A DNA stretch of 38,652 nucleotides from Octopus bimaculoides (GCF_001194135.2 NC_068985.1:34910385-34949036); one strand, 5' to 3'. Shown: positions 4,245 to 35,346, counted from the first letter of the stretch. Notes: a model not told the origin generated them from the sequence alone. Program-made: numbers and translations.

Positions 4245-4286
4245 ATGTGGAAGATGTTTATGCAACTATTTCATCTGAACCAAGCA
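4245..4286 (+). CDS. Micro-exon A1 (42 nt, phase 1-1) of host gene; xVEDVYATISSEPS
   Basis: Pyrimidine tract ttttcattttcttttatgaag, then 42 nt, then GTAAGT. Open in phase 1. Paralogous to the other cassettes, and flanks are shared with 9729. Confidence 0.75.
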
Positions 4287-4338
4287 GTAAGTATAATAAA
4301 TACAATTAATAAATAGCATTACATTTCATATCATTTTC

Positions 4339-4385
<47 letters not shown>

Positions 4386-5040
4386 TTAGCTGAAATACCT
4401 AGCATTGCCTGACTCAGAAAATTAACAGAAACATTGCAAAGCTCTTTATCTAACTTTTTAGTAAATATTTTCAAAGAAAAAAAAAAAAAAAACACTCAAG
4501 GAAATTTCAGACAAAGAACACTTTGTAGACCTTTTCATTTTTCTTCTTTTAAGGCTATAATTTGATTTCTATATTCCAAACATATGCAAGTTCAATTCTG
4601 TAAAAATTTGTACACAAATTCAAATCTTTTGAATCCCTTTTCTATTTCAGTTTAAACTAACCCTTACCCTAACTCAAAATTGTAATCCTAAATGTAATCC
4701 TAACTCGAAACCCTAATGTTAAATTCTAACCCTCAGCTCTTACTTTAAAACTTAAGATCCTAATCCTAATTTTATCCCTAAAATCTAAACTACAATACTA
4801 ACCCTAATATTAAATCCTAAACCCAATCCCCAAAGCTAGCCCTTAATTTTTGTGTGGAATCATGATCTCCTATATTTGAAACATACTTCTAAAAAAAAAT
4901 TGAGAACATTAAAATAGTTACCGTATATAACTTTAAAATTAAGCAGAACAAAAAGTGATAAGCAATTGCAATTTTGAAAAACATCTTATTCGCAGAATTG
5001 TAATATCTGCTATTTAAAACATAGAAAGTGGAGAAGTACA
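4386..5040 (-). mobile_element. Probable decayed non-autonomous Helitron
   Basis: The left end ttagctgaaatacctagcattgcctgac is a degenerate form of the Helitron 3' end seen intact at 25519 (ctagcagaaatacccggcgttgcccggg). Internal (aaccct/aatcct)-like repeats. Right boundary uncertain. Confidence 0.4.
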
Positions 5041-5047
5041 CACATGC

Positions 5048-5088
<41 letters not shown>

Positions 5089-5339
5089 CACACACACACA
5101 CACACACATATGACATAGCTACCATCCAATGACTATCATCCTGTAACACATATAGCCTAAAAGCTGCTTCTCTATTCAAAGCACAAACATAACCATCAAC
5201 AGTTTGAAGGTAGATAAAAAATGTAGGACCACAAATTTCATGGAGAAAATAAACGTAAATAAAAACATTCCTGTTGAGTTGGATACACAGTATAAACTCT
5301 TCCCAGAACATTGTTAAATTTGATATCAGGATAACCATC

Positions 5340-7220
5340 AACCTCAGTTCCCCGATCCCTTATCTGGTGGTCAATGAGGAAACTAGGGATAGATGAATGG
5401 TTAGTGAGAGCTGTGTGAGTCAAGTACAGGGACGCTGTCAGTAAGGTGAGGGTTGGTACCGAGTACAGTGAAGAATTCTGGGTAGAGGTAGGGGTCCACC
5501 AAGGTTCAGTCCTCAGCCCCCTCCTATTTATCATAGTCCTCCAGGCAATAACAGAGGAATTCAAGACAGGATTCTCCTGGGAGCTCCTCTATGCTGATGA
5601 TCTTGCTTTAATTGCTGAGTAACTATCAGAACTAGAGGAGAAGTTTCAGGTGTGGAAGCAAGGATTAGAATCAAAGGGCTTTAGAGTCAACCTAGCTAAA
5701 ACCAAAATCCAAATAGGTAGGAAGGTAGACAAACCAAAAACCCCTTCAGGTAGATGGCCCTGCTCGATCTGTAGAAAAGGCATTGGTAGAAACTCTATAA
5801 GATGTACCCAGTGTAAGCTACGGACACATAAGAGGTGCAACAATATCAAAGGACAGTTAACTAGGAAGATAGTTTTTGTATGTGGCAGATGCTCAGGAGC
5901 AATAAACACTGAAAATGTGCAGAGAACAACTTCTGCCACATTCCAGGGAGAAAAACTAGAAGTAGTTGATACCTAGGTGACCAAGTCAGTAGTAGGGGAG
6001 GGTGCACTGAAAGTGTATCTGCTAGAATAAGAATAGCCTGGGCAAAATTCAGAGAGCTCTTACCTCTGCTGGTGACAAAGGGCCTCTCGCTCAGAGTAAA
6101 AGGCAGACTGTATGACTCATGTGTACGAACAGCCATGCTACATGGCAGTGAAATATAGGCCGTGACTGCTGAGGACATGCATAAGCTTGCAAGGAATGAA
6201 GCCAGTATGCTCCGATGGATGTGTAATGTCAGAGTTCATACTCGACAGAGTGTAAGTACCTTGAGAGAAAAGTTGGACCTAAGAAGCATCAGTTGTGGTG
6301 TGCAAGAGAGACGATTGCACTGGTATGGTCACATGGCGAGAATGGATGAGAATAGCTATGTGAAAAAGTGCCACACCCTAGTAGTTGAGGGAACCTGTGG
6401 AAGAGGTAGACCCAGGAAGACCTGGGATGAGGTGGTGAAGCATGATCTTCAAACATTAGGCCTCACCGAGGCAATGACTAGTGACTGAGACCTTTGGAAA
6501 TATGCTGTGCGTGAAAAGACCCAGCAAGACAAGTGAGACCATAACCTGTGGCTTTTAACATGGGTGTAGCCAGCCCACTTATGCGTACCTTTCCTTCTTT
6601 GGACACATAACTCAGCTTCAAAGACCTGTTGATGCAAGTGAAATCGAAATCGAACCAAATTCAACAACTGGCACCCATGCCAACCTTCCTTCATTGGACA
6701 CTAAACTCTGCTTGCAAAGACCTGTTGGGGGAAGTGAAATCAAAATTGAACCAAATTCGATGACTGGCACCCTTGCCAGTGGAGCACTAACAGCACCATC
6801 CGAGTGGGATCAATGCCAGAGCAGCTGTCTGGCTTCTGTGCCGGTGGAACGTAATAAAGCACCATTTGAATGTGATCATTACCAGCATTGCCTTACTGGC
6901 ACTTGTGCTGGTGGCAAGTGAACACAACATTCAAGCGAGGTCGTTGCCAGTGCTGCTGGACTGACTTCTGTGCAGGTGGCACGTAAAAAACATCATCTGA
7001 GCATGGCCATTGCCAGTACCGCCAGACTGGCCCTCTCGCCGGTGGCACGTAAAAGCACCCACTACACTCTCGGAGTGGTTGGCATTAGGAAGGGCATCCA
7101 GCTGTAGAAACTCTGTCAGATCAGATTGGAGCCTGGTGCAGCCATCTGGTTCACTAGTCCTGGGTCAAATCGTCCAACCCATGCTAGCATGGAAAGCGGA
7201 GGACGTTAAACGATGATGAT
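5340..7220 (+). mobile_element. 5'-truncated RTE-clade LINE: RT C-terminal half, 3' UTR and (GAT)n tail
   Basis: VGVHQGSVLSPLLFIIVL, WELLYADDLALIAE, VNLAKTK, a Cys-rich insert (CSICRKG..CTQCK), EASMLRWMCNV and RGRPRKTWDEVV. Tail ...ccatgctagcatggaaagc..gttaaacgatgatgat. Several stops and frameshifts. Confidence 0.9.
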
Positions 7221-8880: not shown

Positions 8881-8951
8881 AAATATAAATAATTCCCCAC
8901 TTCTTTTCTGGCAAATAATAATAATATATAATACATCTGATATAAATATTC

Positions 8952-9095
8952 GGCACTGTCATGGTATTAGCTATCAGAAGTGAAAGTAGAAAAAGGTGGA
9001 AAGTATGTATAATTAGAGTTGTTAGGTCTATATAGAATATATTAGAATATTTGGCACTATCATGGTATTAGCTGTCAGAAGTGAAATAGAAAAAT
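8952..9095. repeat. Local direct duplication, ~40 bp unit, period 101
   Basis: ggcact(g/a)tcatggtattagct(a/g)tcagaagtgaaa at 8952 and 9053. Confidence 0.8.
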
Positions 9096-9109
9096 CTAAA
9101 CAAGGAATG

Positions 9110-9220
9110 TTAGACAGTTTGATTGGAACTGGTAAGCCGGAGAGCTGTACCAGGTTCCAATCTGATTCGACTTGGTTTCTACAGCTGGGTGCCCTTCTTT
9201 ATGCCAACCACTCTAAGATA
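9110..9220 (-). mobile_element. Antisense RTE-tail fragment
   Basis: accaggttccaatctgat...tttctacagctgggtgcccttc..gccaaccactc is a diverged reverse complement of ~7070-7190. Confidence 0.65.
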
Positions 9221-9318
9221 ATTAAATTTACTATGTGCTCCTATATATATCAATTGTTTTTGTTTTTTCAGCATATGTTATAGTCTGAGATTTTATTATA
9301 TCATATCATAAATAGTGA

Positions 9319-9620
9319 AGGTGTGTCATATAGTGGTTAGGGTATATGGCTCATAATCATAAAATTTTAAGTTCAATTCCCAGTGGTACCTTGTATTCTT
9401 GAGCAAGATACTTTATTCCATGTCATTCCAGTTCACTCAGCTGGCAAAAATGAGTTGTACCTGTATTTCAAAGGGCCAGGCTTGTCACATTCTGTGTCAC
9501 ACTGAATCACCTTGAGACCTATGTTAGGGGTACATGTGTCTGTGGAGTGCTTGTACTTTAGTTTCATGAGCAGGCTATTCCAGTGATCAGATCAACTAGA
9601 AACCTTGTCATCTTAAGTTA
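9319..9620 (+). mobile_element. tRNA-derived SINE
   Basis: A-box-like tcatatagtggttag, B-box gttcaattccc, then a CORE-like cttgagcaagatacttt segment. Confidence 0.6.
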
Positions 9621-9728
9621 TGGAGTAATAGTTTACATCACAAATGTTTTTCAATATGTCTTAGAAATGATTCATACCATGCACCACACATACAAGTAAT
9701 AAATAACTTTTTATTTTCTTTTTTAAAG

Positions 9729-9770
9729 ATGTGGAAGGTAATTATGAAATTGTTTCGATCAAGTCAAACA
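9729..9770 (+). CDS. Micro-exon A2 (42 nt, phase 1-1); xVEGNYEIVSIKSN
   Basis: tttttattttcttttttaaag, 42 nt, GTAAAT. Open. Upstream (catgcaccacaca..caag.aataaat) and downstream flanks align with A1. Confidence 0.7.
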
Positions 9771-10119
9771 GTAAATAGAATTAATATCATTAGTAAATAA
9801 TGTTCTATTTCATATTACTTTCAGAATTATATATATAGTTAATATATATATATTATATAATATATAGAGTACACACACATCCCTACTCTCACATGCATGC
9901 GTGCATGCATGCACTCACACATGCATGCACGCATGTACACACACATGCACACATATCAAAACAGAAGGATGAAAAAGTTTGGTATACTTTTAATTCCATG
10001 TTATACATGTTTCTTTACACAATTCTCCAACATTAGTATGCTGATGGTTCTGTCAGTTTGTTACCTTCATGATGATAATAATAATGCTAATAAAAAGAAG
10101 ATGAATAATAATATGCATG

Positions 10120-10515
10120 CATAAATAACAAAGAACTAGAAAAGATGGAAAAGTACAGACTACTGAAAGATGAAATTGTAAGAATGTGGACTATGAAGAG
10201 AGTGTCTGTAATTCCAGTAGTTGTAGGGGCACTCGGAGCACTAACAACCAAGTTCGAGAAATATGTCAGAGAAATCTAAATTGATATGAGAGCAGAGCAA
10301 GCCCCAAAAACTGCACTGCTGGGTACAAGTAACATTTTGAGATTGGTACTTAGATGTTGAATGTCTCCCAAGATAGTTAACAACCAACTAACAAAAGTTC
10401 TAATGTGCAGAAAGAGACCCTGTGCGACCTCTGACAGCTGGCTGCTGTCTGTTCTTACAGAATTTACTGGAGCAAAGAAGATCGAGCACTCTGAGAAGTA
10501 AAACAATAATAATAA
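10120..10515 (+). mobile_element. R4/Dong-like (RLE-type) non-LTR retrotransposon, 3' end
   Basis: KELEKMEKYRLLKDEIVRMWTMKRVSVIPVVVGALG...KTALLGTSNILRLVL*. Ends at an (AAT)n tract. Confidence 0.75.
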
Positions 10516-11435
10516 TATATTGAAAGCAGAGGTAAAAAGAAAAACAAAGGAAGAAGTACAAAAAGGATATGTAGAAGAATTACACAAGAAGGGACTACAC
10601 AATCAATTCCATATAGCCACAACAGAAGTTACTACAATAAATAGGTGGAATTTGCTGATGAAAAGACCCCCCCCCAAAAAAAAAAGAGACCGAGAGCACT
10701 ATACTGGCAGTGCAAGACCAAGCTTTGACCACGAACTGGAGGTGGGGTCAACCTTAGGAATGAGCAAGTGTCTCCACTGCACTGCATCTGCAATAGAGTG
10801 TATAAAACCATTGCCCATATTACAAACGAATGCCCTTGACTTGCCCAAAACCACTACAAGGTACAGCGAGACAATCAGGTAGCAAAAGTACTACATTAAG
10901 AACCGTGTGAAAAGTGGGGGTTAGAGAGAGGAAAGATGTGGCATGAGCACAAACTACAAAGAGTGGCGGAGTAGGAGACTAGCAAAATCCTCTGGGATTT
11001 CCCAATCCAAACAGATCAGGTGCTAGAACATAACAGACTGGACATAGTGGTGATGGACAAGGTGCACCACATATGCTATATAGTTGATGTTGCATGCCCA
11101 TTTGACCCACAAATAATCAAAAAGAAAGGCCCAAAGATAGGTATCTACAACCCTCTTAGGTACGAAATAGCCCAGCAATGGAAAATGAAGAAGGTGAAGA
11201 TAGTTCCAATTATTGTTGGGTCTTTGGGAACAGTATACGAAGGCATCAAGGGGAATATAAAGGAAATTGGAGCTGAGTGCCCAGTAGAACTGTTACAAAA
11301 GGTTTGCCTCCTTGGTATGACCAGAATACCCAGGAAAGTATTACATAGCTGAAAAGTACGTATAGCATGGTACTGTAGGCTGTAGGTAGCAAGCCTGTTA
11401 CACTTGTAAGAATCCAGGAGCTCCAACAAAACCTA
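10516..11435 (+). mobile_element. Second R4/Dong-like element: post-RT region, zinc-knuckle remnant and restriction-like endonuclease
   Basis: ETESTILAVQDQALTTN, KILWDFPIQTDQVLEHNRLDIVVMDK..CYIVDVACPFD (PD-(D/E)xK-type RLE) and VPIIVGSLG..LQKVCLLGMTRI. Confidence 0.85.
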
Positions 11436-11444
11436 TAATAAAGA

Positions 11445-11505
11445 GAAATATTATTATTATTGTTGTTGTTGTTGTTGTTGTTGCTGTTGCTGCTGCTGCT
11501 GCTGC
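11445..11505. repeat. Graded trinucleotide microsatellite (ATT)n to (GTT)n to (GCT)n
   Basis: Directly visible. Confidence 0.9.
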
Positions 11506-11509
11506 CATT

Positions 11510-14140
11510 CCTGAGAGTGAAATACAAAAATGCTTTGGGTGCGTGTAGGAACCAAAGACCCACATCACCTAAGGAAAGAAGTTTGGAACTATAGAGCTGA
11601 GATTTGGGACAGAAGAAGAAGCTAGGTGTAATTCCTCAACCACTCTGAGGAATACAACTTTTTCTTAATCCCCAGCTATTGTGGCCAATGCCTTGCCAAG
11701 ATTAGGGTGCTGAATATGCTGCCAGAAATATCCATTACCTGGTTAGTGGCAGCCATCTTGGCAGGTTTAGAAGATGAAATCACAATATTGGAGGTCAAGA
11801 AACTACCTAAGCAAAACTGGTTAGGTATAGGTATGGAACTGACCTTGCAATGCAACCATATTGACCAGCTGCTCAATCTAATCGATCTCCCAGATGGTAC
11901 TCACCTGTCAGTGTTCATGGAGGGTAAAAAGCCGAGATGCCACACATGTGAATCTGTACTTCATTTAAAGGCTTCCTACCCTGAAACAAGGAAAAATAAA
12001 GTCCCACTGTTGCCAACATTACAAACACCATAAGTGCAAAATCATGAACAAGTACTCAAGATTCGTATACCTACGCCCACACCCATGTGCACACCCACTC
12101 CCAAACCAAGACAGAGAAGAAGTCTACCCCTGGTTGCCATGGAAAAGCAAGTTTCTCCTGAATGCTCTTCCTCCCAAACCAACAACAACTGCAATGACAT
12201 GGAGAAAGACGAGCTGAATGATCCATGGATCACATAGACAAAATGGAGTTGGTGAAAGAGGAGGAGAGTACATAACCCTATTCCAAGAAATCAACAAAAT
12301 CTTATTCTGAAATCACAACTGCAACACAATTCACAACCACTCCAACAAAAACTGCAAGAACAAGATCAACAACTTCAAAAACAGCAACACCATCAACAAC
12401 AGCATGAAATCACCGAAACACAGAAACCACCGATTACAGAACTTCAAAAATATTCATCAGACAGTAGATGAAATGTACCCATCAATTTCACTGTTGTGAA
12501 CAAGTGTAACAGTGAATTGATGGATTTTATAAGTCAAAAACAAATGCAAAATAGAGACAGAGGGAAAGGAATTTGAGGATTTTATCCTCAGATCCCTCAA
12601 GGACAGACCTTTAATTAAAACATCGTCAGATGTTTATAAAACTATAATAGAAAAATTCTCTGGTAGTGTGGCGATTTTTAAAATGTCAGTTGATATAAAG
12701 GCTTTCTCCAACTAGCATGGCTGTGCTGAAAATGGGATGTATGAATGTGCATGGCCTGGGATCATCTTGGAAGCAGGGTCACTTGCTCAATAATTTCAGG
12801 TCACTTGATCTGGATGTGGCTGCCATAAGCAAAACAAAGATCTCCAGAAAACATGCTCTAGCATCCATTTTTAAGGACTACGAGGTATTCTCATCTTGTG
12901 GTCTATCAGGAGCGGGTGATGGTGTAGCAGTGCTACTCTGGAAATCCTTAGACCTCCAAGTATGGATTATCTTTCTGGACCCAGATGGTAGGGTGGTGCC
13001 TTTAGACTGGTAGTGGTTTATGTTCCAACAGGGGCTAGAAGGCCAGATTTCTTCAGGTGTTTAGAAACATTCTTGGGAATGTCTTGCACTTCAATACTAG
13101 TGGGGGACTAGAATAGTATTTTGGATGCATGGAAGGACTGTGTGGGTTTAATACAAAGCAGAAGTGGGTGTAAAAGCCTCGAAAACCTGCTCAGGACTTT
13201 TCAGGTTTCTGACAGGTACTGACTGGATTTCCCTGATGTGCCAGTGTGGGCATGGAGCAACCACAGCAGGTCATTCAGATTGTATTTAGATAGAGTATTT
13301 GTTAGGTCAGAGGATAGGGATAGCATAGGTTGTCCACAATTTAAATTGGTCAGCTACACAGATCACAAATTTGTAATATGCTCAGTTGAAAGATGACAGG
13401 GACTGAAGTAGCAAACGAGTTAAGTGGCAGTTGAAGGAGGTTATCGTCAACAACCGATGGTGGATCGCTCTGAAGAGAGTGATTAGAGTAGCACCAATGG
13501 TGGTTAGCAAAGATTTAGCAACAGAAAGAAATAGATTTGAGGGGGAACTAGTTAGCAAACTAGAAAAGACATTGTGACCACCGTGTTAGTGGCGAGAATG
13601 ATCCTTGACCATGTCTTTGAGGTGAAACACAAAGGGTGCATTGTCAGAGCTAAGGCCTGTATGCTAAAACATGAAGAAACTAAAGCTGTCCAATGGGCCT
13701 AAAAGGTAGAAACATGACGTGGAAACAAAGCCACGATCAAGTCTTCGACAGATCAGGATGGATGCATGCTACTCTGTTCTCAGCAAATGTGTGCAGCTTT
13801 TCAGCAGCACTTTGCTTCATACCTAGATGACCTACCATGGCTCTTGGTGATGGACGCAAGATTCTGCAAAAACCCGATTACAGCCTCTGAAATATGGGAG
13901 GCGATGAGTGGTTGCACAAGTTGGAAATCCCCCAATTTGGATGGTCTGCCCTACGAATTCTATGTTTTCATGCCAGATTTGTTTGGCAGCTTCTTGGCGG
14001 ATATCTACAGTAACTGGCAGCAGAATGGGAGAATTCCTAGTGCTGTTAGCTGGGGTGTAGTAACACTGCTCAGAAAGGATGCTGACAATGAGGATGTGCT
14101 AAGGGATTTTTGGCCCATAAATCTGCTAAATGTGTTTATA
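11510..14140 (+). mobile_element. Tx1/L1-like LINE: ORF1 remnant plus ORF2 (AP endonuclease and start of RT), 3'-truncated
   Basis: ORF1 has a zinc-knuckle remnant RCHTCESVLHLKASY. ORF2 has MGCMNVHGL..DVAAISKTK..GVAVLL, YLDRVFV and SYTDHKFV (APE), then KSPNLDGLPYEFY..GVVTLLRK..DFWPINLLN (RT start). Many lesions. Ends at (TG)n. Confidence 0.85.
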
Positions 14141-14149
14141 CTGATGTGA

Positions 14150-14156
14150 GTGTGTG

Positions 14157-14222
<66 letters not shown>
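14150..14222. repeat. (TG)n microsatellite
   Basis: Directly visible. Confidence 0.95.
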
Positions 14223-14223
<1 letters not shown>

Positions 14224-14342
14224 ACGTGTGCGCGTTCATGTGTCGAATCTGTCTCATTAGTAATCTGATAGTCTCAGACAGCCCAATATATTTTAGATGT
14301 TGTTTATAGCCATATATTATATTCATTATTTTAATTTCTTAG

Positions 14343-14379
14343 GACAATGCTTACGTTAACTTTTCCAAGAAACCTGATA
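14343..14379 (+). pseudogene. Frameshifted cassette A3 (37 nt), DNAYVNFSKKPD remnant
   Basis: ttaatttcttAG, 37 nt, GTAAGC. Homologous to the 17851 and 23374 exons and their flanks, but with a deletion across the acceptor. Phase-1 entry reads xGA CAA TGC TTA CGT TAA. Confidence 0.65.
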
Positions 14380-14500: not shown

Positions 14501-15395
14501 ACTTTGTTTTGAACTCATTTTCCAGCCCTGTCTCTGGAATCAGTCCTGTTGAAGTTAGCAAAGTTTCTTTCTTCGTGTAAAATATACAGTTTAATAACAT
14601 GTGTATGCATGTACTTAAATAGAATACTGAAAATGTTGAAAATTCTACACATAATTTACACCTTTATTGATGCTTATTAACAATTCAGCCCATAAATATT
14701 TCTTGTAAGCCTTAGTTGTACAAATAAATCAAACAATGATATATTTCACATTAAATTCACTAGATGTTTACTCAGGCAAGAGACATAAAGTATGGAAGAG
14801 ATTTGCAATGGTGAATATGTCACATTATGATCAGTTGTTGTTGTTGATAATTAACCATAATGAGGCCTGTTTTTGAATATCTCTAGCTTGAAAGGGATTA
14901 TGAAAAATATCTTATTTCTCCAGCCATATTTAGGAATGGCTTTTAATGGTAACGTGACAGAAATAGTAGAATCAATATTCTGAGTTCAAAAACCATAGAA
15001 GTAAATTTTATTCTGTGAACCACCCTATATGTAGTAACTTTCATATCGTTTCTCTAATAAAATTAGCATTTTGATTATGGAATAAAATTTTGAATGCCAA
15101 TTTACTGAAGAACTTTCTCTCCATGCACTAATTTCGAAATGCCATTTTACCAAAATTACTCTTTGTTTCCTTTTGTTCATACAAAATGAATTTATTAAGC
15201 AATTCTTTTCTTTTTCCCAATACATCAGTTAGAGGATGAAAAACTTATACTATACATTCAGTTTGGTTGTATATATATATATGACATGTACAATATGTTT
15301 TACTATATTTTTAGTTACTTTCTGTGCAATATCAAAATATTTAAATCATCCTCTCCAAACAATAAATATACCTATTTTTATGTAATTTCTTGAAG

Positions 15396-15455
15396 CTGTG
15401 GAAGATCAGGATGCTGAAATTAGTGATCCCAGATATTTATGTATGAGACACCTAA
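15396..15455 (+). CDS. Micro-exon B1 (60 nt, phase 1-1); xVEDQDAEISDPRYLCMRHL
   Basis: atttcttgaAG, 60 nt, GTAAGT. Open. 46/60 nt identical to B2. Confidence 0.7.
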
Positions 15456-15787
15456 GTAAGTATAATCAATATTGATAGTACATAGTATGATCTTAGAAGA
15501 ACAAAAACAGATAACTAACAATCATGAAATATGTCACCCTTGAACTTTTGCATGTATGTGTGTGTGAGAATGTTTGAACCTATTTCATTAGTATTTACTA
15601 TGGCCGTGTCAGCGCAATACTAACATAATTTAAATATTATTTCTAGCCATGCTATTTATTCTTTGTTCAGTTTCAATTCACTTATAACTTTCTTTTGTCT
15701 CTTCCAAAACTTTTTGCTGCTTTTGCAACCTTGTCAATGGGTACAAAAATAAAGAATATGTACATTATATATATATATGTATGTGTA

Positions 15788-15824
<37 letters not shown>

Positions 15825-15903
15825 NNNNNNNNNNNNNNNNNNNNNNNNNNNNNNNNNNNNNNNNNNNNNNNNNNNNNNNNNNNNNNNNNNNNNNNNNNNN
15901 NNN
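15825..15903. other. Assembly gap (79 N) within a microsatellite
   Basis: Run of N between (TA)n and (TG)n. Confidence 1.
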
Positions 15904-15926
15904 TGTGTGTGTGTGTGTGTGTGTGT

Positions 15927-17227
15927 AAGGGTAAAAGGTGGTGGAACAATACTGTAGACAGGGCCATTAGAGCAAAGAAACAGGCCTGGAATGCCTGGAA
16001 GAGTGGGGGTGGCAGGAGAATGTATCAGATAGCCAAAAGGGAAGCTAAGGGACAGGTATATATAGACAAGGGAGTAGCAGAAAAGAAGTTTGCCAATGTT
16101 CAGTGACTTGAGGACCCAAAAACTGAAGTATTTTGGATTGCAAGAAAATGTGTGAGAGAAAACTGTGAAGTCATAGGAGAAAAATGTGTCCACATGGATG
16201 ATGGTGCACTTGCTTTTAATGATTCTAAAAAGAAAGAGGCTTGGAGAAGCCATTATGAAAGATTGCTGAATGTGGAGAATGAATGGGAGGAGGAGAGTCT
16301 GCCAAAGGTTGACCAAATTGAGTGACTAACTATACGAATTGACAGTACCCAGGTAGATAGAGCAAACAAGGATATGAAAACAGAGAAAGCACCTGGCCCA
16401 TCAGGAATCACTGCTGGAATACTTAAAATATTGGGTGATGTGAGTTATGCTCTTGTCACATGCATCATAAATCAGTTAGTTCATGAAGGAGTCATACACA
16501 ATGACTAGTGTAGCAGCACCATAGTCAACTGCTACAAGGGAAAAGGTGATGCTTTAGATAGAAATAACTACAGGGGTATCAAATTATTGGATCAGGTGAT
16601 GAAAGTTACAGAGAGGGTCATAGCCCAACTAATTAGGGAGAGGGTTATCCTAGACGAGATGCAGATCGGTTTTGTGCCAGGCAGAAGCACCACTGATGCT
16701 ATATTTCTGGTAAGGCAACTGCAGGAGAAATACCTAGCCAAAGATAAACCTTTGTACTTGGCTTTTATCGACTTGGAGAAAGCCTTTGACAGGTTCCTCC
16801 AATCCCTTATCTGGTGGTCAATGCGGAAACTGGGGATAGATGAGTGGCTAGTAAGAGCTGTACAAGCCCTGTACAGGGATGCTGTCAGTAAGGTGAGGGT
16901 TGGCAATGAGTATAGTAAAGAATTCAGAGTAGAAGTAGGGGTTCACCAAAGATCATTATAGTCCTCCAGGCAATAACAGAGGAATTCAAGATAGGCTGCC
17001 CCTGGGAGCTCCTTTATGCTGATGAACTTGCTCTAATAGCCGAGTCACTGCTAGAAATGGAGACGAAGTTTAGGGTGTGGAAGCAAAGTCTAGAATCAAA
17101 GGGTCTTAGGATTAACATAGTCAAAACCAAAGTCTTAGTAAGTAGGAAGGCTGTCAAATCACAACTCCCTTCAGGTAGATGGCCCTGCTCAATCTGTAGA
17201 AAATGCATGGGCAGAAACTCCATATGA
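15927..17227 (+). mobile_element. RTE-clade LINE internal fragment (linker and RT)
   Basis: WWNNTVDRAIRAKKQAW, KAPGPSGIT, KGKGDALDRNNYRGIKLLDQVMKV, GFVPGRSTTDAIF, AFIDLEKAFD, GVHQ and WELLYADEL. Same family as 5340-7220. Confidence 0.9.
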
Positions 17228-17586
17228 TGTTACCTGGTATGTTGATTTTTCTGTTTATTTTTATGTGTCTTGATTATGCCTGCACTGACGATTAGAAAGT
17301 GTATTTTGTACACTAGCTATGAAATCATATATGATTTGCTGCTGAATCTGTTTTTAAGAGTTTGGTTCAAGATTTGCATTCCTTCGCATTTAGTACACTG
17401 TATTCATTATGGTAGTTTTGACTTTAAGAGTCCCTCATAGGATGAGGCATTTACGTGCAGTAATGCCCTTAATATAAATAAAAATACACACACACATATA
17501 TTGCTACATTCCATGCAACATCAAAACATTAAAAACATCCTCTCCAAATAATAAATATACCAAATTTTTAATTTAATTTTTTGAAG

Positions 17587-17646
17587 CTGTAGAAGAGCAA
17601 TACGCTGAAATTAGTGAGCCCAAATATTTAGAAATGAAGCAACAAA
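17587..17646 (+). CDS. Micro-exon B2 (60 nt, phase 1-1); xVEEQYAEISEPKYLEMKQQ
   Basis: tttaatttttttgaAG, 60 nt, GTAAGT. Open, with two Tyr motifs. Confidence 0.8.
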
Positions 17647-17850: not shown

Positions 17851-17892
17851 ACATGGATGGTGCTTATGTTAACATTTCAAAGAAACCTGGAG
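17851..17892 (+). CDS. Micro-exon A4 (42 nt, phase 1-1); xMDGAYVNISKKPG
   Basis: ccttttttaatttctcaaAG, 42 nt, AG|GTAAGT. Open, with a 204-nt intron from B2. Confidence 0.8.
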
Positions 17893-20660: not shown

Positions 20661-20676
20661 TGCATGTATGTATGTA

Positions 20677-20718
<42 letters not shown>

Positions 20719-20721
<3 letters not shown>

Positions 20722-22330: not shown

Positions 22331-22400
22331 GATATATATATATATATATATATATATTACTACTTTCTGTGTAATGTCAAAATATTTAAAACATCCTCTT

Positions 22401-22928
22401 NNNNNNNNNNNNNNNNNNNNNNNNNNNNNNNNNNNNNNNNNNNNNNNNNNNNNNNNNNNNNNNNNNNNNNNNNNNNNNNNNNNNNNNNNNNNNNNNNNNN
22501 NNNNNNNNNNNNNNNNNNNNNNNNNNNNNNNNNNNNNNNNNNNNNNNNNNNNNNNNNNNNNNNNNNNNNNNNNNNNNNNNNNNNNNNNNNNNNNNNNNNN
22601 NNNNNNNNNNNNNNNNNNNNNNNNNNNNNNNNNNNNNNNNNNNNNNNNNNNNNNNNNNNNNNNNNNNNNNNNNNNNNNNNNNNNNNNNNNNNNNNNNNNN
22701 NNNNNNNNNNNNNNNNNNNNNNNNNNNNNNNNNNNNNNNNNNNNNNNNNNNNNNNNNNNNNNNNNNNNNNNNNNNNNNNNNNNNNNNNNNNNNNNNNNNN
22801 NNNNNNNNNNNNNNNNNNNNNNNNNNNNNNNNNNNNNNNNNNNNNNNNNNNNNNNNNNNNNNNNNNNNNNNNNNNNNNNNNNNNNNNNNNNNNNNNNNNN
22901 NNNNNNNNNNNNNNNNNNNNNNNNNNNN
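22401..22928. other. Assembly gap (528 N) with a duplicated ~100-bp flank
   Basis: aaacgatgataatgatg..(ta)n ttactactttctgtgtaatgtcaaaatatttaaaacatcctctt occurs both before and after the gap. Confidence 0.95.
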
Positions 22929-23083
22929 ATATATATATTTATATATATAAACGATGATAATGATGATGATGATATATATATATATATATATATATATTAC
23001 TACTTTCTGTGTAATGTCAAAATATTTAAAACATCCTCTTCAAACAATAAATATGCCCATTTTTTAAATTTAATTTCTTGATG

Positions 23084-23138
23084 TTGTGGAAGAACTAAAT
23101 ATTTAGTGAGCCCAAATATTTAGAAATGAAACAACGAG
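23084..23138 (+). pseudogene. Dead cassette B3 (55 nt)
   Basis: Paralogue of B2 (TTAGTGAGCCCAAATATTTAGAAATGAA shared). Acceptor gaAG changed to gaTG, donor GTaagt changed to GAaagt, and a net 5-nt loss removes the first Tyr. Confidence 0.8.
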
Positions 23139-23373
23139 GAAAGTACAATTGTTATTATTAGTACACATGATCTTAGGAACTATCTTTAAAACGGACAGGG
23201 AGCTAACTCTTATGAAATATGTCACTTTAACTTTTGTCTATTAATATGCATGTAGTATGTGTGAGTGTGTTTGAGTCTATCTCAGTATTTATTATGGTAG
23301 AATCAGTACACAGCTATCTTAAATTAAATACTATTTATAACCATGCTATTTGTTCTTTTTTAATTTCTTAAAG

Positions 23374-23415
23374 ATGTGGAAGGCACTTACATTAACGTTT
23401 CAAAGAAACCTGGTG
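23374..23415 (+). CDS. Micro-exon A5 (42 nt, phase 1-1); xVEGTYINVSKKPG
   Basis: ttcttttttaatttcttaaAG, 42 nt, GTAAGT. Open. 33/42 nt identical to A4. Confidence 0.8.
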
Positions 23416-23506: not shown

Positions 23507-24295
23507 AGGTGAATTACTCCTTTGCAATCCCACCAGATAGAGAGAAGAACCTTTTTCCCATGAAGTTCTCTTCTCAGTTGTGGTTGAGCTTTTTCCTTTT
23601 TACCAAGCCACTGTTTATGACGTTTAACATTTCAATAGAAGATCCATTTTCTGTCACCAGTCACAAGTCTATCCAAAAAGGGTGAAATGAGTGTGCAAGA
23701 ATGGAGAGAAGAGCAGATGTCAACTCGGGTTTTGCGGTTGCTTTTGGACAATTCATGAGGCACCCATTTTCCAAGTTTAGGAACCTTTCCAAGTTGTTGG
23801 TGACGACGATGAAAAGTTGTATGGTTTGAACTCAGCTTTATTGCCAATTCTTCAACTGATAATGCAGGATTTTCTCCAAGTAATGCCTCAACGAGCTTAT
23901 CGTCAAACTCAACTGGACGTCCTGTTCGATCTTCATCTTCAAGGCCAAAATCTCCACTTCTGAATTTTGCAAATCATCTTCTACAAGTTCTTTCATTCAA
24001 GCATTCTTTCCCATAAACTGAGTGTATGTTTCGAGTCGCTTCGGCTGCAGAGTTTCCTTTTTTGTACTCATAAAGCATTATGTGCCTCAAATGCTCTTTG
24101 GATACTTCAATGTTAGAAAGGGTTTTAATCCAAGAAATTTTAATTCTATTATTCTGTAAAATAATATTTAATTAGTTTAAATGTACACAAATGCATAAAA
24201 ATAATTTTTAATTTCATTCAACATTCTAAAATACTATTGAATTTCATTCAATTTTAAAAAAGGTAAAATCAGCCAGAACTTTTGGGATGACCTGA
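23507..24295 (-). mobile_element. Mariner (Mos1/Hsmar-like) element, 3'-truncated, with 5' TIR
   Basis: EVSKEHLRHIMLYEYKKGNSAAEATRNI..RTGRPVEFD..GKWVPHEL..LVTGDRKWIFY..WWDCKGVIH. The 5' end tcaggtcatcccaaaagttctggctg is next to TA. It interrupts the duplicated host intron. Confidence 0.9.
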
Positions 24296-24434
24296 TATAT
24301 GTATGATTGAAATTCAAACTTTGAAAATTTTAATGTTGCTAACATTCATATGTAAGTCTGATATTTTACCCTTTTACTAATCCATACCCTTCGTAAGCAT
24401 ATATCTTGTAAGCTTTATTTATACCAATATAAGT

Positions 24435-25678: not shown

Positions 25679-26444
25679 NNNNNNNNNNNNNNNNNNNNNN
25701 NNNNNNNNNNNNNNNNNNNNNNNNNNNNNNNNNNNNNNNNNNNNNNNNNNNNNNNNNNNNNNNNNNNNNNNNNNNNNNNNNNNNNNNNNNNNNNNNNNNN
25801 NNNNNNNNNNNNNNNNNNNNNNNNNNNNNNNNNNNNNNNNNNNNNNNNNNNNNNNNNNNNNNNNNNNNNNNNNNNNNNNNNNNNNNNNNNNNNNNNNNNN
25901 NNNNNNNNNNNNNNNNNNNNNNNNNNNNNNNNNNNNNNNNNNNNNNNNNNNNNNNNNNNNNNNNNNNNNNNNNNNNNNNNNNNNNNNNNNNNNNNNNNNN
26001 NNNNNNNNNNNNNNNNNNNNNNNNNNNNNNNNNNNNNNNNNNNNNNNNNNNNNNNNNNNNNNNNNNNNNNNNNNNNNNNNNNNNNNNNNNNNNNNNNNNN
26101 NNNNNNNNNNNNNNNNNNNNNNNNNNNNNNNNNNNNNNNNNNNNNNNNNNNNNNNNNNNNNNNNNNNNNNNNNNNNNNNNNNNNNNNNNNNNNNNNNNNN
26201 NNNNNNNNNNNNNNNNNNNNNNNNNNNNNNNNNNNNNNNNNNNNNNNNNNNNNNNNNNNNNNNNNNNNNNNNNNNNNNNNNNNNNNNNNNNNNNNNNNNN
26301 NNNNNNNNNNNNNNNNNNNNNNNNNNNNNNNNNNNNNNNNNNNNNNNNNNNNNNNNNNNNNNNNNNNNNNNNNNNNNNNNNNNNNNNNNNNNNNNNNNNN
26401 NNNNNNNNNNNNNNNNNNNNNNNNNNNNNNNNNNNNNNNNNNNN
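25679..26444. other. Assembly gap (766 N)
   Basis: Run of N. Confidence 1.
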
Positions 26445-29859: not shown

Positions 29860-29895
<36 letters not shown>

Positions 29896-29949
29896 NNNNN
29901 NNNNNNNNNNNNNNNNNNNNNNNNNNNNNNNNNNNNNNNNNNNNNNNNN
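29896..29949. other. Assembly gap (54 N) next to (TA)n
   Basis: Run of N. Confidence 1.
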
Positions 29950-30974: not shown

Positions 30975-31009
30975 ATACTTTACTGGGCAAGGCTGGGTAG
31001 TAAGTCTAG
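30975..31009 (+). mobile_element. Decayed Helitron-like 3' terminus
   Basis: actgggcaaggctgggtagtaagtCTAG|t resembles acccgggcaacgccgggta...CTAG|t. Confidence 0.4.
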
Positions 31010-32037
31010 TGCTAAACTAAAACCTAAGCCTATGCTTTTATTTAATTGAACTATATATAATAAATAAATTAATTTCTTTTTATCCTTTTTCTTCGTTATG
31101 GTGATATATGTACAGGATTTGTACTCTATCATTTCATGCACATTCATTGATGAAGCTTGGATTTTTCATAGATTTCTAAGAATACTTATGGAATTAGAGG
31201 AATTAGATTTATTTTAATTTCATCATTTTATGTAACTAAACTTATCTTTAAGAAAGGTGAATTTTTCATTCCGTGTATAGTTCTGATATTTTTCTCTCTT
31301 CAAAATAGTTTTAGGTTGAATTATATTTAGATATTTAAGTTTTTATTCATTTACTTACCATATTTCCCAGCATTGAAGACACTACTTTTTTCCTAAAATA
31401 AGTCTCAAAAATCTACTATGTGTCCTGGAGGACAAAGGTTGCATTTTTCATAGGCATATCCTAACCCTAGAGGAAAATTATTAATGCTAGGCAGTAATCT
31501 GAATCCCTGTATATGACTGCTCAGTGAAGTGTATAAATTATATTTTGTTAAAGTAGTAAATAAACAAAAGTATCATAAGAAATTCTTTAAATATGCACAA
31601 TCACAAAAATTCATTCCTGTATGGGCAGTGTGTGTTAGATGAGACAACTGACAAGTGATATTTTACATGTGTATCTATATTGCCAGTATTGTCACTCTCT
31701 TCAAACAAACTGACTTTAAAGGAACATTATTAAGTGACGAAAGAAGTAAAACTGCGTTATGTTAAAAGGGTTTACAAGCAAATATTAATAACAATACTAT
31801 CATAATCACTTACTTTCTGTGATGAAACATGTTGCATTCAGTCACCACTTACTCACTCTCTGTGATGAAACTATTGTGTTCAGATTGCAACATAGGCTTC
31901 CTCCTTGGTCTTAACCAGTTCATGGTCTTAACCATGAAAGCCATGGTCTTAACCAGTTCAAGCCAGAACTTGCTGATGTCAGGAGTGATCTGCAAATTCA
32001 GAAGATTTTACTTAAAATTTTTAGCCCAACTGTTATT

Positions 32038-32212
32038 ATGGCAACTTCAAGTAGAAGATACTCTTATACAATCGGCTATAAGCTACAAGTGATTGGATAT
32101 GCCAAACAGCATGGTAACAGAGCTGTAGAGAGGTATTTTGGAGCACCACCAACTGAGAAAATGAACCACCACTGGAAGAAACAAAAGGACCTGTTGAAGC
32201 CCGCATCAAGAC
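32038..32212 (+). mobile_element. pogo/Tigger-like transposase N-terminus (DNA-binding domain), interrupted by piggyBac
   Basis: MATSSRRYSYTIGYKLQVIGYAKQHGNRAVERYFGAPPTEKMNHHWKKQ fits the RRSY..FKL.V..YA..GNR.A.R.F pattern of pogo-type transposases. Confidence 0.65.
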
Positions 32213-32216
32213 TTAA

Positions 32217-34400
32217 CCCTTTAGTGTTGTAACTGGCCAAAATTAATTCCCCGTTATTTGTTCAAGCTTGCCGTTATCGAATTCTCGTAGCTTTGAGATA
32301 ATGTGAGATCCTTTATGCAAATATAAATACTGTGAAGTTGTTTAGACTCATGATTTTTTTCAACGTTTGAAGAGAAGAGTTTACCTTGGTTGTGAAAGAA
32401 ACAGCATCAGCAAGTAGCGATTCCAACTTTGAAGGATTTACAATTGATGATATTGAAAATATAAATGAAAACAAAAGTATTTTGTCTTCGGATGAATCCG
32501 ATATCAATATCAGTGATTATTCGTCGGATGAGGAAGATTTTAATAATGAAAGTGATGAAAATGATATCATAAACATGGCAACATGGTCAAAAATCACAAC
32601 ACCAAACACTATTTCTGATTTTACAGAAAACACTGGTCCACAACACAATTTACCTCCTGATGCTCAACCATTAGACTATCTGTTTTTATTTTTACCAGAA
32701 AGTTTTTTTGAAAATGTTGCGGAGGAAACAAACAAATATGCGCAACATTTAATTACAGATCATGGAAGAAACGATCCACTATGGAAGTCAACTAATACTG
32801 CAGAAATGAGAGCGTTTTTTACAATTAAGATTATGTTTGGTGTTAAACAGCTTCCTCGACTGTGGAACTATTGGAGTCCCGATGTAAGGTATGGCGATCC
32901 ATATATTTCGTATATAATGTCGAAGAAGAGGTATTCGAAAATATCTCAGAATTTGCATTTAACTGATTCTGCTAATGCCCCCAACAAAAACGACCCAAAC
33001 TACGATCCCCTCTACAAAGTATGTCCTGTAATCGATTTACTTGTTAATAATTATAAAACTGTGTATCTACCTGGGAAAAATCTCAGTGTAGATGAAGCCA
33101 TGATAGGCTGTAAGGGCAGAGTACATTTTCGGCAGTACATGCCTGCCAAACCTACTAAATGGGGGATCAAGGTATGGGAAGTTTGTGAATCAGAGACGGG
33201 ATATTGTGTAAACTTCAAGGGAAAAAATATAATGGGAAAAGACCGCATGGATTGGGGCATGATGTCGTATGGTCTCTTACACAACCATTTCACCATCAGC
33301 ACTGACACCTCTATTTCGACCGGTTTTTTTTCTTCAGTGGTTTTGGCTGAAAATCTTGCCTGTGTAAGTACTTACATGTGCAGTACTGTTATGGGAAACC
33401 GTAAAGGTTTACCCCATGAAATAAAAATAAAATTTTAAAAAAGAGGGGACTTTTTACAAATGCAAAAAGAAAATTTATTGATTACTGCTTTTAAAGACAA
33501 AAGACAGATTTTATTTCTGTCTTCTAATGAACAACCTGGTGTTAGTGCTGAGGGGAAACCCCTCGTGAATATTTGTTATAACAAATATATGGGTGGGGTT
33601 GATAAATCTGATCAATATCGGGAATATTACCTAGTTGGTTGACCTGGGAAGAAATGGTGGAGGTACATTTTGTGGTTTTTAGTTAATTTAACTATAGTAA
33701 ATTCATATATTGTATATGTAAAAAGCCACAAAGTACCTCCGCCACCAAAAGACTATGACTACTTGAAATTTTGGGTTGACATCGCATCTCAGTTACGTGA
33801 GGGCTTTTCTTCTAGAAAGCACAGAACTGGGAGAAAAGCAAAATTAACTGAGGTGGATGTCAGCAGAGAAAATATTGACTTCCATCAAGTCAAAAAGATA
33901 GTTTGCAGACTGTGTTCGCCGCAAAAAAGAAAAACTGCAAAAGGATTCCAGGTCGAGACTGCATATATGTGTTCGTTTTGCAAAGTGCCCTTGTGTAAAG
34001 GGTGCTTTGGACAGTTTCACGACAGAAATATGGCATAAGTGTATAATTTTGTATATTCCTTTTCATTTTATTATATAATATGTGAAAGTGAGAAATATAT
34101 ATTAATTTTCAGTATGTTACACACCTGTATTCACCTTCGTTTCACCTGTTAATGAGATTTTTTTATTAGATGCATTCTGTTATGTAAATGAATTTGTTAA
34201 ATTGTATAAGAGTGCATAGCCAATGGTATATTGAGTAGTAAAAGAGTTTTGTACTTTATTTTCAATGATAATTTTTGAATGAAATATAGAAAAAGAGTAA
34301 AATCTTCTACCGATTACACTTGTATTTTAATTAATTCAAATTAATGTACCTCATCTAGATTCAAAGTAGTTTATTTGACAGTTGTATTAAAGCAATGGCA
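32217..34400 (+). mobile_element. piggyBac element with near full-length but inactivated PGBD4-like transposase (~32386-34038)
   Basis: TTAA at 32213-16 followed by CCCTTTAG. Acidic N-terminus, LSVDEAMI, YMPAKPTKWGIKVW, YFDRFFSS (shifted frame), YNKYMGGVDKSDQ and C-terminal CRLC..CSFCKVPLCKGCF..FH. Frameshifts near 33220 and 33430 plus stops. Right TIR not clearly seen, so the end is approximate. Confidence 0.9.
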
Positions 34401-35335
34401 TAGTGGTTAATGAATAAGGCATTAACCATTATGCTATATGTAGACTATTCTTACTAAATATTTGCACCAACACTTGGTATAAAATAAAGAAAAGTGTCCT
34501 ATCTTCATTCATAGATTTATCCCCAGGTTTTAGTTAAATGTCGAACTTATTGTTAGAGAACTGCACACACACACACCCAAATGTATTTTACTTACATGAC
34601 CCTAGTAAATTGGATGAAAGAAATAATAAGTAAAGCTGGTGATCATAAGAGTTAAGTCCCCATGTGGGAATGAACTAAGCAGGAAAATGAAAAAAAACGA
34701 TTAGAATTGAACCTCTCCCTCATGATTTCATGGTGCATTAACTATTATATGACAGCTGGTAACTCAAATTCAACAGTGAAATAAGCCAATTCATAGCTAA
34801 ATTTCGAAATATCCTATTTGAATCCATGCATATGAATGAGAAAGGAAAGGGTGATGGCAAACTGGTAGTGGGATCATTTCAACTGTGTGTGAGTATATGT
34901 GTGTGTATGTATGTGTGTATGTGAGTATGTGTGTGCGTGTGCAATGGAAGTGAACATTCAATACTGAAAAGAAAAATCAAACAGCGTTTCAACTGTATGT
35001 GAATATATGTGTGTATGTGTGTGCATGTACAAGGGAAGTATGTGTGAACCAGCATTCTTTCAGTAACAAATGACGATCAATGTCACATCTCAAAAGACAA
35101 CCACTAGATAACATTGACAAGTGCATTAATTTGATTTACCATCCGTATTTATATATAAAATACTACAATTAGCCATCATTTTTGATGGCAGGGGGCCAGC
35201 GAGTTGTTTAATATTTAATTATTTTTATGCAAAGCACGTAATCATTTTCACTAACAACAAGCATTAAATAACTGTTTAAGAAATCAAGATCTCATGACAA
35301 TATCCTATGTACATTTTTATTATTTTATTTTTCAG

Positions 35336-35346
35336 ATTACCAGTGA
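35336..35346 (+). CDS. Candidate terminal coding exon of the micro-exon gene (xYQ-stop), followed by ~200-nt 3' UTR
   Basis: Strong acceptor tttttattattttatttttCAG. Phase-1 entry gives xAT TAC CAG TGA. AATAAA at 35531-35536. Confidence 0.45.

Follow-up and report, generated by a model that had tools for sequence, protein, structure and literature searches.

A tandem array of micro-exon cassettes

The window analysed here is a stretch of 38,652 nucleotides (nt) from Octopus bimaculoides (GCF_001194135.2 NC_068985.1:34910385-34949036). Its + strand carries an array of short, mutually homologous cassettes of 42 or 60 nt, six of which had been picked out by a first-pass annotation, made from the sequence alone, as phosphotyrosine micro-exons of a receptor or adaptor tail. 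We found that five of the six are exons spliced together in RNA. We consider it probable that the window holds the cytoplasmic-tail region, that is the 3' part, of an unannotated, octopus-restricted type I receptor of the immunoglobulin (Ig) superfamily (IgSF), in which duplicated micro-exon cassettes supply one or two Tyr docking motifs each.

All six cassettes are bounded by AG and GT, preceded by a pyrimidine-rich tract and AG, and open in phase 1-1 (Table 1); the coordinates, lengths, boundaries, phase, freedom from stops and homology reported in the first-pass annotation were all reproduced. So was Tyr at codon 6 in five of the six, the exception being the cassette at 15396, which has Asp. 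The donor is GTAAGT in five cassettes and GTAAAT in the one at 9729. An acceptor at 35336 leads to (D)YQ and a stop, with TGA at 35344-35346. When the six cassettes are spliced in order to this acceptor they encode 99 residues with 8 Tyr, a translation that we obtained again; one peptide of the predicted tail, in what we call the Tyr frame, is DVYATISSEPSTVEDQDAEISDPR. The in-order splice proposed earlier holds in RNA for five exons, but the cassette at 9729 is without RNA support.

To gauge the chance background, we counted every stop-free segment of 42 or 60 nt between AG and GT over the whole window, which gave 110 on the + strand and 103 on the - strand. A strong splice signal was defined as a donor matching GTAAGT at 5 or more of 6 positions plus at least 70% pyrimidines at positions -20 to -3. 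Such signals were present in 6 of the 110 segments on the + strand, exactly these cassettes, and in none of the 103 on the - strand. The likeness between cassette units extends beyond the exons, with 72-78% identity over 190-500 nt into the flanking introns. Because the homology reaches into introns, the cassettes are tandem duplicates of exon-plus-intron units, and the duplicated units are partly arranged as [60-nt + 42-nt] pairs. Two decayed cassettes and one 89-nt alternative exon had been missed by the first-pass annotation, and a tblastn search of the window for transmembrane (TM), Ig or more cassette exons found none beyond these eight cassette copies.

Table 1. Cassettes, other exons and assembly gaps of the window (positions counted from its first letter; L002 is the O. 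vulgaris locus)
Feature	Position	Strand	Description
Cassette exon	4245-4286	+	42 nt, (D)VEDVYATISSEPS, phase 1-1; first tail cassette within the window; O. vulgaris ortholog at L002 53783-53824
Cassette	9729-9770	+	42 nt, (N)VEGNYEIVSIKSN; open reading frame intact, donor weakened to GTAAAT, apparently unspliced
Decayed 42-type cassette	14343-14379	+	(DNAYVNFSKKPD); a 7-nt deletion took the acceptor and 5 exon bases; 37 nt left, frame-breaking
Cassette exon	15396-15455	+	60 nt, (T)VEDQDAEISDPRYLCMRHL; Asp in place of first motif Tyr, YxxM site retained
Gap	15825-15903	.	Intron between 15396 and 17587; flanked by TA/TG microsatellites; spanned by 15455>17587
Cassette exon	17587-17646	+	60 nt, (T)VEEQYAEISEPKYLEMKQQ (YAEI + YLEM); alternatively skipped
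Cassette exon	17851-17892	+	42 nt, (N)MDGAYVNISKKPG (YxN)
Gap	22401-22928	.	Intron; 528 N; spanned by 17892>23374
Decayed 60-type cassette	~23084-23139	+	Acceptor AG>AT, 5-nt deletion, in-frame stop, donor gone
Cassette exon	23374-23415	+	42 nt, (D)VEGTYINVSKKPG (YxN)
Alternative exon	24263-24351	+	89 nt; reads GKISQNFWDDLIYV-stop, replacing the DYQ end
Gap	25679-26444	.	Last intron; spanned by 23415>35336 and 24351>35336
Gap	29896-29949	.	Last intron; spanned by 23415>35336 and 24351>35336
Terminal exon	35336-35555	+	(D)YQ-stop, ~210 nt of 3' untranslated region, AATAAA at 35531-35536

Cassette exons are joined in RNA and one is alternatively skipped

RNA runs from the same species were used, with reads and contigs placed on short stretches free of microsatellites and junctions mostly read from loose ends. 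Words from the exons occurred in the runs at 0.13, the proportion expected if the exons alone are transcribed. The junction 17646>17851 was seen with its GT..AG ends, and 4286>15396, 15455>17587, 17892>23374 and 23415>35336 were read from loose ends. Support for 4286>15396, which skips past 9729, came from a contig of run X25 and 8 reads of run X38, while 17646>17851 and 17892>23374 were found in X24, X25 and X26. Examining junctions, as the first-pass annotation had suggested, showed five exons spliced in one + strand transcript. Spliced RNA joins the exons flanking each of the four intronic assembly gaps, and the order, orientation and frame of the array are therefore independent of gap length.

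The transcript reads TM-exon end > 19-nt micro-exon > 77-nt exon > 4245 > 15396 > (17587) > 17851 > 23374 > (24263-24351) > 35336, and its first three elements all lie outside the window. Across all used exons and the 32 nt known of the upstream exon, only the Tyr frame is open; of the other two, phase 0 meets a TGA in those 32 nt and the third stops within exon 4245.

Exon 17587 is a true cassette exon. Its inclusion (15455>17587, 17646>17851) was seen in an X25 contig at depth 19.5 and in X24 reads, and its skipping (15455>17851) in an X25 contig at depth 13.2 and also in X26. Since every cassette is phase 1-1, any of them could in principle be skipped, and the first-pass annotation had proposed that any subset could be left out to give combinatorial output. 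In the runs read, this was borne out for exon 17587, but not for the rest of the array: exons 4245, 15396, 17851 and 23374 look constitutive, at low depth, and exon 9729 was never included, with zero depth in 8 RNA runs, several of which had reads or words from adjacent exons, and with its words absent from every indexed RNA run. The remaining splice variation, in the 77-nt and 89-nt exons, alters the frame or the C-terminus and does not shuffle modules. Combinatorial cassette shuffling is thus weakly supported.

The 89-nt exon is joined on both sides, by 23415>24263 (X25 contig and 4 X24 reads) and 24351>35336 (X25). It is either an alternative C-terminus or a poison exon, and it is 94% identical in O. 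vulgaris, where the stop is kept. The terminal exon is covered by RNA contigs and reads from 35336 to ~35567 and is 92% identical to its O. vulgaris ortholog. A receptor model of the family described below, P0005, likewise ends in ...PGDYQ. Over the decayed cassette at 14343-14379 RNA depth was zero. Reads placed on the one at ~23084-23139 were considered as evidence of its expression and rejected as cross-matches from exon 17587.

Several further short patches of RNA fall in the window (17406-17436, 3600-3774, 15530-15682, 36277-36309, 9450-9510 and 23509-23900). They are 95-99% alike and mostly partial fits, those at 9450-9510 and 23509-23900 are at very high depth, and they are probably transcripts of repeat copies elsewhere rather than exons of the cassette gene.

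Upstream exons point to a membrane-spanning segment

Two sequences precede exon 4245 in RNA, neither of them within the window. The first, ...TATTTATGGAATCAATGCAAGTTTGACAGGAG, is the end of the 77-nt exon, which is open in the Tyr frame (..IYGINASLTG|D). The second is an X25 unitig, AAAAAAAGAG+GTGTAAAACACAATAAAAA, joined straight to exon 4245. It starts with 10 nt that match the end of the O. vulgaris TM exon exactly, and its next 19 nt form a micro-exon that matches 18 of 19 nt of an O. vulgaris ortholog at L002 21154-21172 (cag|..|gtaagt). We also considered this second sequence as read-through of the TM-exon donor; the intron alignment was no better than background, and a separate 19-nt micro-exon is preferred. 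The first-pass annotation had suggested extending the transcript in the 5' direction, and an in-frame upstream exon does exist, namely the 77-nt exon, preceded by the 19-nt micro-exon.

The arrangement of these pieces can be read from O. vulgaris, where locus L002 runs collinear with the window (81-93% identity). Its upstream part has, on the same strand, four Ig exons, a TM exon (14811-14915), the 19-nt micro-exon and then the 77-nt exon (38101-38177), and no other terminal-exon homolog was found in L002 before the orthologous one at 88.9 kilobases. Together, the TM-exon end and the micro-exon encode KKRGVKHNK, to be compared with IIRGVKNNK in P0006 and GVKRNK in P0004, and this is the predicted juxtamembrane linker typical of the cassette-tail family. 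The identity of the TM exon and the frame are suggested by orthology, and the tail would be continuous with an Ig/TM 5' half in O. bimaculoides.

Two X25 unitigs, of 136 nt (29+77+30) and 59 nt (29+30), have the lengths expected of a de Bruijn bubble in which the 77-nt exon is present on one path and absent from the other. The path that includes it (depth 21.8) keeps linker and cassettes in one frame; the path that lacks it (depth 7.9) is frameshifted, and a stop falls inside exon 4245. In the family as a whole the linker consists of two frame-shifting micro-exons, one of 19 nt (phase 1>2, GVKxNK; L002 21154-21172) and one of 17 nt (phase 2>1, xTSSAK; L001 15725-15741). Given these phases, skipping just one of the two shifts the frame of the whole tail. 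In the lineage of the window gene the acceptor of the 17-nt micro-exon has been lost, as seen in the O. vulgaris ortholog, and the 77-nt exon, of the same phase, stands in its place.

The cassettes belong to a family of Octopus Ig-domain receptors

Searches with the spliced peptide returned only small 'uncharacterized' Octopus proteins (P0001-P0004; 46-63% identity, phmmer E 1e-27 to 4e-19), the 63% being that of the window tail to P0001. Looking for the spliced peptide in related genomes had also been suggested by the first-pass annotation, and homologous cassettes were indeed found, in Octopus. A profile built from these small proteins, searched against 1.84 billion representative proteins, gave 14 matches, 13 of which are family members, and all 12 that were looked up by name are from Octopus; the weakest match, P0015 (E ~1e-3; species not looked up), has no cassettes. 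Relatives annotated as 'uncharacterized protein' include LOC106880794 and LOC106874547 in O. bimaculoides, LOC115212116, LOC115212119 and LOC115229375 in O. sinensis, and CAI9722591/2 in O. vulgaris.

The long relatives have a signal peptide, Ig domains (Pfam Ig_3, I-set, C2-set_2), a 23-residue TM segment and a stop-transfer sequence (HKIRAVKCKK or KCHKKRG). In P0005, P0006, P0008 and P0017 the Ig domains, TM segment and basic stop-transfer are followed by cassettes. The receptor or adaptor tail of docking modules proposed in the first-pass annotation thus agrees with the place of homologous cassettes as the post-TM tail of Octopus Ig type I receptors.

The gene structures of relatives match that of the window. 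O. sinensis LOC115212119 (L004) has a separate exon of 42 or 60 nt, downstream of the TM exon, for every cassette. One cassette per exon is likewise the rule in LOC106880794 (L001), a paralog in O. bimaculoides that also has the 17-nt micro-exon. Isoforms X2 and X3 of O. sinensis LOC115229375 differ by exactly one 14-residue cassette; the isoforms P0008 and P0016 differ at the N-terminus alone, with no cassette difference. The window cassettes in turn fit the family's 14-residue (DMDGxYVN[IV]SKKP) and 20-residue (xxEEQxAExSEPKYLxMKxx) profiles. They lie in 42/60-nt phase 1-1 exons bounded by aag|...|gtaagt, one cassette each, and they are preceded by the GVKxNK linker micro-exon, seen in RNA outside the window. 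Homologous cassettes, the one-cassette-per-exon phase 1-1 structure, the [60+42] unit, juxtamembrane micro-exons and the DYQ/GYQ end are all shared with the Octopus paralogs. Unlike them, the window gene is a separate locus, with no overlap with L001 or L003, has the 77-nt exon in place of the 17-nt micro-exon, and has its own pattern of dead and silent cassettes.

A search for an Ig/TM ortholog in O. bimaculoides returned only a Logan genomic contig of another paralog and no full-length model. The tail, together with P0001, P0002 and P0004, matched no Pfam family at E<=1; in Pfam and PDB searches of the family the matches were to generic Ig domains only. In the literature searched we found no description of a cassette-tail family in Octopus.

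Two models of the family call for care. The hydrophobic N-terminus of P0001 was considered as the family TM segment and rejected, since it shows no homology to the Ig receptors' TM exon. The 26-cassette tail of P0005 is doubtful as the product of a single gene, since its call overlaps LOC115212119, and P0005 was used for architecture alone. Such overlaps recur: the 1220-residue P0005 spans LOC115212119 (L004, O. sinensis CM016863.1:39880019-39938722), and a 980-residue Ig call spans LOC106874547 (L003, O. bimaculoides CM046605.1:34628937-34676406). These are either very long genes spanning several arrays or read-through models that merge neighbours, and annotation of the cluster is unreliable. 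In O. bimaculoides the paralogs occupy CM046605.1 34.6-35.3 Mb.

Conserved positions fit predicted YxN and YxxM docking sites

The 42-nt cassettes share the consensus D-M/V-D/E-G-x-Y-V-N-I/V-S-K-K-P, which contains a YxN site, and the 60-nt cassettes share E-E-Q-(Y)-A-E-x-S-E-P-K-Y-L-x-M, with a YxxM site and a less conserved YAEI. Across the family we compared 39 unique 42-type cassettes, in which the Tyr is kept in 37 and the +2 Asn in 29, the +4 Ser and K-K-P also being near-invariant. In the 31 unique 60-type cassettes, the second Tyr (30 of 31), Met or Leu at +3 (28 of 31) and an E-x-S-E-P core are kept, and the first Tyr occurs in just 18. This is the pattern of conservation expected of YxN and YxxM docking sites, as predicted from the motifs, and the Grb2-type YxN and p85-type YxxM motifs that the first-pass annotation had named do fall at conserved positions. 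Phosphorylated YxxM binds p85. Two YxN sites, YVNI and YINV, are present in the tail that the window gene expresses. Binding by the Grb2 SH2 domain is dominated by the +2 Asn, and the c-Src SH2 domain favours an acidic residue at +1 and Ile at +3 (PMC10065799).

We also compared the cassettes with the immunoreceptor tyrosine-based inhibition (ITIM), switch (ITSM) and activation (ITAM) motifs. No cassette fits the ITIM, (S/I/V/L)xYxx(I/V/L), or the ITSM, TxYxx(V/I); the residues at -2 of the tail Tyr are D, G, E, P, G and G. With respect to the ITAM pattern, Yxx(L/I)-x6-12-Yxx(L/I), the stretch YVNI-x10-YINV over exons 17851 and 23374 fits the spacing and ends in V, which makes it ITAM-like at best. 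Within a single cassette, just 4 residues separate YAEI from YLEM, which ends in M.

Cassette turnover and alternative explanations

Comparison with O. vulgaris indicates that cassettes have been born and have died between the two species. Both decayed cassettes of the window have intact orthologs in O. vulgaris, one of 42 nt for the cassette at 14343 (MDDTYVNFSKKPD) and one for the cassette at ~23084 that is used in model P0002 (VVEEQSAEVSEPKYLEMEKR). The ortholog of exon 15396 has Tyr (VEDQYAEIS) where the window has Asp, and the ortholog of exon 17587 has lost its second Tyr (Tyr>Cys). A block at 8936-14261, carrying exon 9729 and long interspersed nuclear element (LINE)-like open reading frames, is without a counterpart in the otherwise collinear O. 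vulgaris locus and is a lineage-specific insertion or deletion. The unit of exon 9729 is closest to a cassette of the paralog LOC106874547 (L003 1486-1851, 79.5% over 391 nt), with donor GTAAGT.

A number of findings speak against a working receptor tail. Expression is low, with a few reads for every 2 Gb of sequence read. Each species is short of one motif Tyr, and in the window two cassettes are dead and one is silent. The ratio of nonsynonymous to synonymous rates (dN/dS) against O. vulgaris is 0.57 (7 synonymous and 17 nonsynonymous changes; Fisher p = 0.28), not significantly below 1, and exon identity to O. vulgaris (83-95%) is barely above that of the flanks (73-94%); selection on the window gene appears weak. 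After the TM exon the O. vulgaris sequence has diverged, with no coherent linker frame unless the micro-exon is used. The Ig/TM exons lie outside the window, and RNA in O. bimaculoides shows only 10 A-rich nt of the presumed TM exon. In a protein collection of 5.8 billion clusters we found no protein for the window locus and none that joins its TM exon to its tail. Several annotated relatives are 'tail-only' models of 100-173 residues with doubtful N-termini, and the N-x-S conserved in YVN(I/V)S is also an N-glycosylation sequon, which would be relevant if the tail were lumenal.

The weak selection, the replaced Tyr residues, the dead and silent cassettes, and the low depth at a locus without protein annotation are also what a decaying remnant would show. 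Under this explanation, which we judge unlikely, the array is a partial or degenerating duplicate that is still transcribed, its RNA is non-functional or a substrate for nonsense-mediated decay, and its open frame is inherited from a recent duplication. The frameshift isoform that lacks the 77-nt exon, the stop in the 89-nt exon and the lost acceptor of the 17-nt micro-exon in the O. vulgaris ortholog can be read in the same way. However, one common frame is open through the five used exons, the 77-nt exon and the 19-nt micro-exon while the other two are closed, the splice sites are near-consensus, and the orthologous exons of O. vulgaris are intact after ~16% synonymous divergence. Moreover, the 77-nt exon has precisely the phase (2>1) required to stand in for the lost 17-nt micro-exon, O. 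vulgaris has kept the 89-nt exon with its stop, and the two species differ little in the YxN/YxxM cores of the used exons.

The short relatives raise a further alternative, in which an internal promoter gives a small protein of ~100 residues without an Ig ectodomain, acting as a soluble or lipid-anchored multi-Tyr adaptor or decoy. RefSeq has such annotations without Ig domains at LOC106874547 and LOC106880794, P0011 begins at a Met inside its homolog of the 77-nt exon (MNPLEAVQQVSVYGSNASLAE|DVEGNY...), the 77-nt exon of O. vulgaris also has an in-frame Met, and P0001 begins with a hydrophobic exon of its own that is unrelated to the TM exon of the family. These N-termini nevertheless look like pipeline artefacts: the start of P0014 is translated from the conserved intron flank of a 60-type exon, the first exon of P0002 sits among Ig exons, and LOC106874547 is nested in the 980-residue Ig gene call. 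RNA of the window gene itself extends upstream of the 77-nt exon to the 19-nt micro-exon and an end resembling that of a TM exon. A tail-only product seems improbable to us.

It is more improbable still, in our view, that the Tyr-rich acidic repeats are extracellular or lumenal, in a secreted or type II protein, and are Tyr-sulfated and N-glycosylated rather than substrates of cytosolic kinases. Acidic residues do lie upstream of the Tyr, the sequon is conserved in the 42-type cassettes (29 of 39 have the N and 33 of 39 the S), and the short hydrophobic N-terminus of P0001 might be a signal peptide that is cleaved off. Shuffled modules of extracellular proteins typically have phase 1-1 exons. 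Set against this, the position at -1 of the Tyr is seldom acidic, and the full-length relatives, with a signal peptide, sequon-rich Ig domains, the 23-residue TM segment and a basic stop-transfer, place the cassettes on the cytoplasmic side.

Relation to known receptors and proposed function

Among known systems, the window gene works most like PECAM-1, and in motif content it resembles LAT, LAB and LAX; it is a member of neither group. PECAM-1 has six Ig domains, and eight short exons that undergo alternative splicing encode its disordered tail; loss of exon 14 takes away a phosphotyrosine docking site and abolishes SHP-2 binding (PMC5664058, PMC5314882). Like the family of the window gene, it is an IgSF type I protein with one short exon per docking module, in which splicing edits the signalling output. 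The two have no sequence homology, and PECAM-1 carries two ITIMs (VQYTEV, TVYSEV) where the octopus tails carry YxN and YxxM. In addition, the PECAM-1 tail exons are not tandem duplicates, whereas the octopus tails consist of recently duplicated homologous cassettes subject to birth and death.

LAT, NTAL (LAB) and LAX have multivalent tails in which several pYxN sites bind the Grb2 SH2 domain, and valence determines the signalling assemblies formed (PMC3291652, PMC2803307). These transmembrane adaptor proteins (TRAPs) have a very short ectodomain and a juxtamembrane CxxC palmitoylation motif, unlike the octopus family, which has a multi-Ig ectodomain and no CxxC after the TM segment. The likeness to LAT lies in the several YxN sites of the tail, with the +2 Asn in 29 of 39 family cassettes and Grb2 binding predicted; a Pfam search gave no match to the LAT family. 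The distal sites of LAT, YVNV, are similar to YVN(V/I)S. The resemblance is one of convergent short linear motifs, not homology.

Proteins of the FCRL, CD22 and Siglec type offer a third comparison. Their splice isoforms vary in tail length, and their Tyr-motif tails are encoded by several small exons (PMC4950983). They share with the octopus family a multi-Ig type I architecture, tandem gene clusters and multi-exon Tyr tails. Their motifs, however, are ITIM- or ITAM-like and they belong to vertebrate lineages, whereas the octopus tails have no canonical ITIM or ITAM and no detectable relatives outside Octopus in the library of 1.84 billion proteins. In vertebrates it is already an established principle that splicing edits the multi-exon phosphotyrosine tail of an IgSF receptor; the biochemical function in octopus is a prediction.

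In the mechanism that we propose, ligand-driven clustering would lead Src-type kinases to phosphorylate the cassette Tyr, and the phosphorylated cassettes would recruit SH2 domains of the Grb2/drk type (pYxN), the PI3K p85 type (pYxxM) and the Src type (pYAEI). Translation of the window tail, phosphorylation of its Tyr and SH2 recruitment are predicted steps, and so is any role of the frame-setting exons in regulation. Cassette birth and death would determine the number of docking sites on the evolutionary scale, and skipping of exon 17587 would determine it in the cell; the 77-nt exon, which sets the frame, and the 89-nt exon, which carries a stop, would decide whether the tail as a whole is retained.

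A broader proposal is tentative, and we hold it with more doubt than confidence. Octopuses may have independently evolved lineage-restricted Ig receptors whose tails of docking micro-exons, Grb2-type (YxN) and PI3K-type (YxxM), are programmable by splicing. Valence would be tuned by skipping and by rapid cassette turnover, and the tail would be turned on or off via the 19-, 17- and 77-nt micro-exons and the conserved stop exon. Such receptors would be an invertebrate functional analogue of LAT, CD19 or PECAM-1-type co-receptors in immune or neural recognition.

The array matters on several counts. A reading of the raw sequence recovered a real micro-exon array that tracks based on open reading frames and the current annotation had missed. 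The array points to an uncharacterised, octopus-only cluster of Ig-domain receptors, in a field where cephalopod immune and cell-recognition receptors are poorly known. With tails that are predicted to be multivalent for Grb2- and PI3K-type partners and with fast cassette turnover, the family is a concrete candidate for surface signalling in hemocytes or neurons. It also offers a clean case of short linear motifs evolving by exon duplication, decay and alternative splicing.

Assembly gaps and repeats

The 528-N gap at 22401-22928 is flanked on both sides by the same 99 nt (22302-22400 and 22948-23040, differing by one ATG microsatellite unit). Given these repeated flanks, the gap is probably spurious, the trace of two overlapping contigs that were not merged, and not a stretch of missing DNA. 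Long TA and TG/CA microsatellites lie at 15764-15824, 15904-15926, 20676-20722, 29860-29895, 36954-37030 and 38604-38652, and several of them border gaps.

The introns carry remnants of mobile elements. In the last intron, on the + strand, a piggyBac-type transposase remnant is split into two open reading frames (32386-33438 and 33670-34038), with Pfam matches to DDE_Tnp_1_7 (E = 3e-49) and zf-Tnp_2. Reverse-transcriptase or LINE-like open reading frame fragments lie in introns at 16587-16961 (+), 991-1329 (-), 5650-6488 (+) and 12717-14149 (+). The domain RVT_1 was confirmed for 16587-16961, and similar repeats occur at the paralog loci with 85-97% identity.

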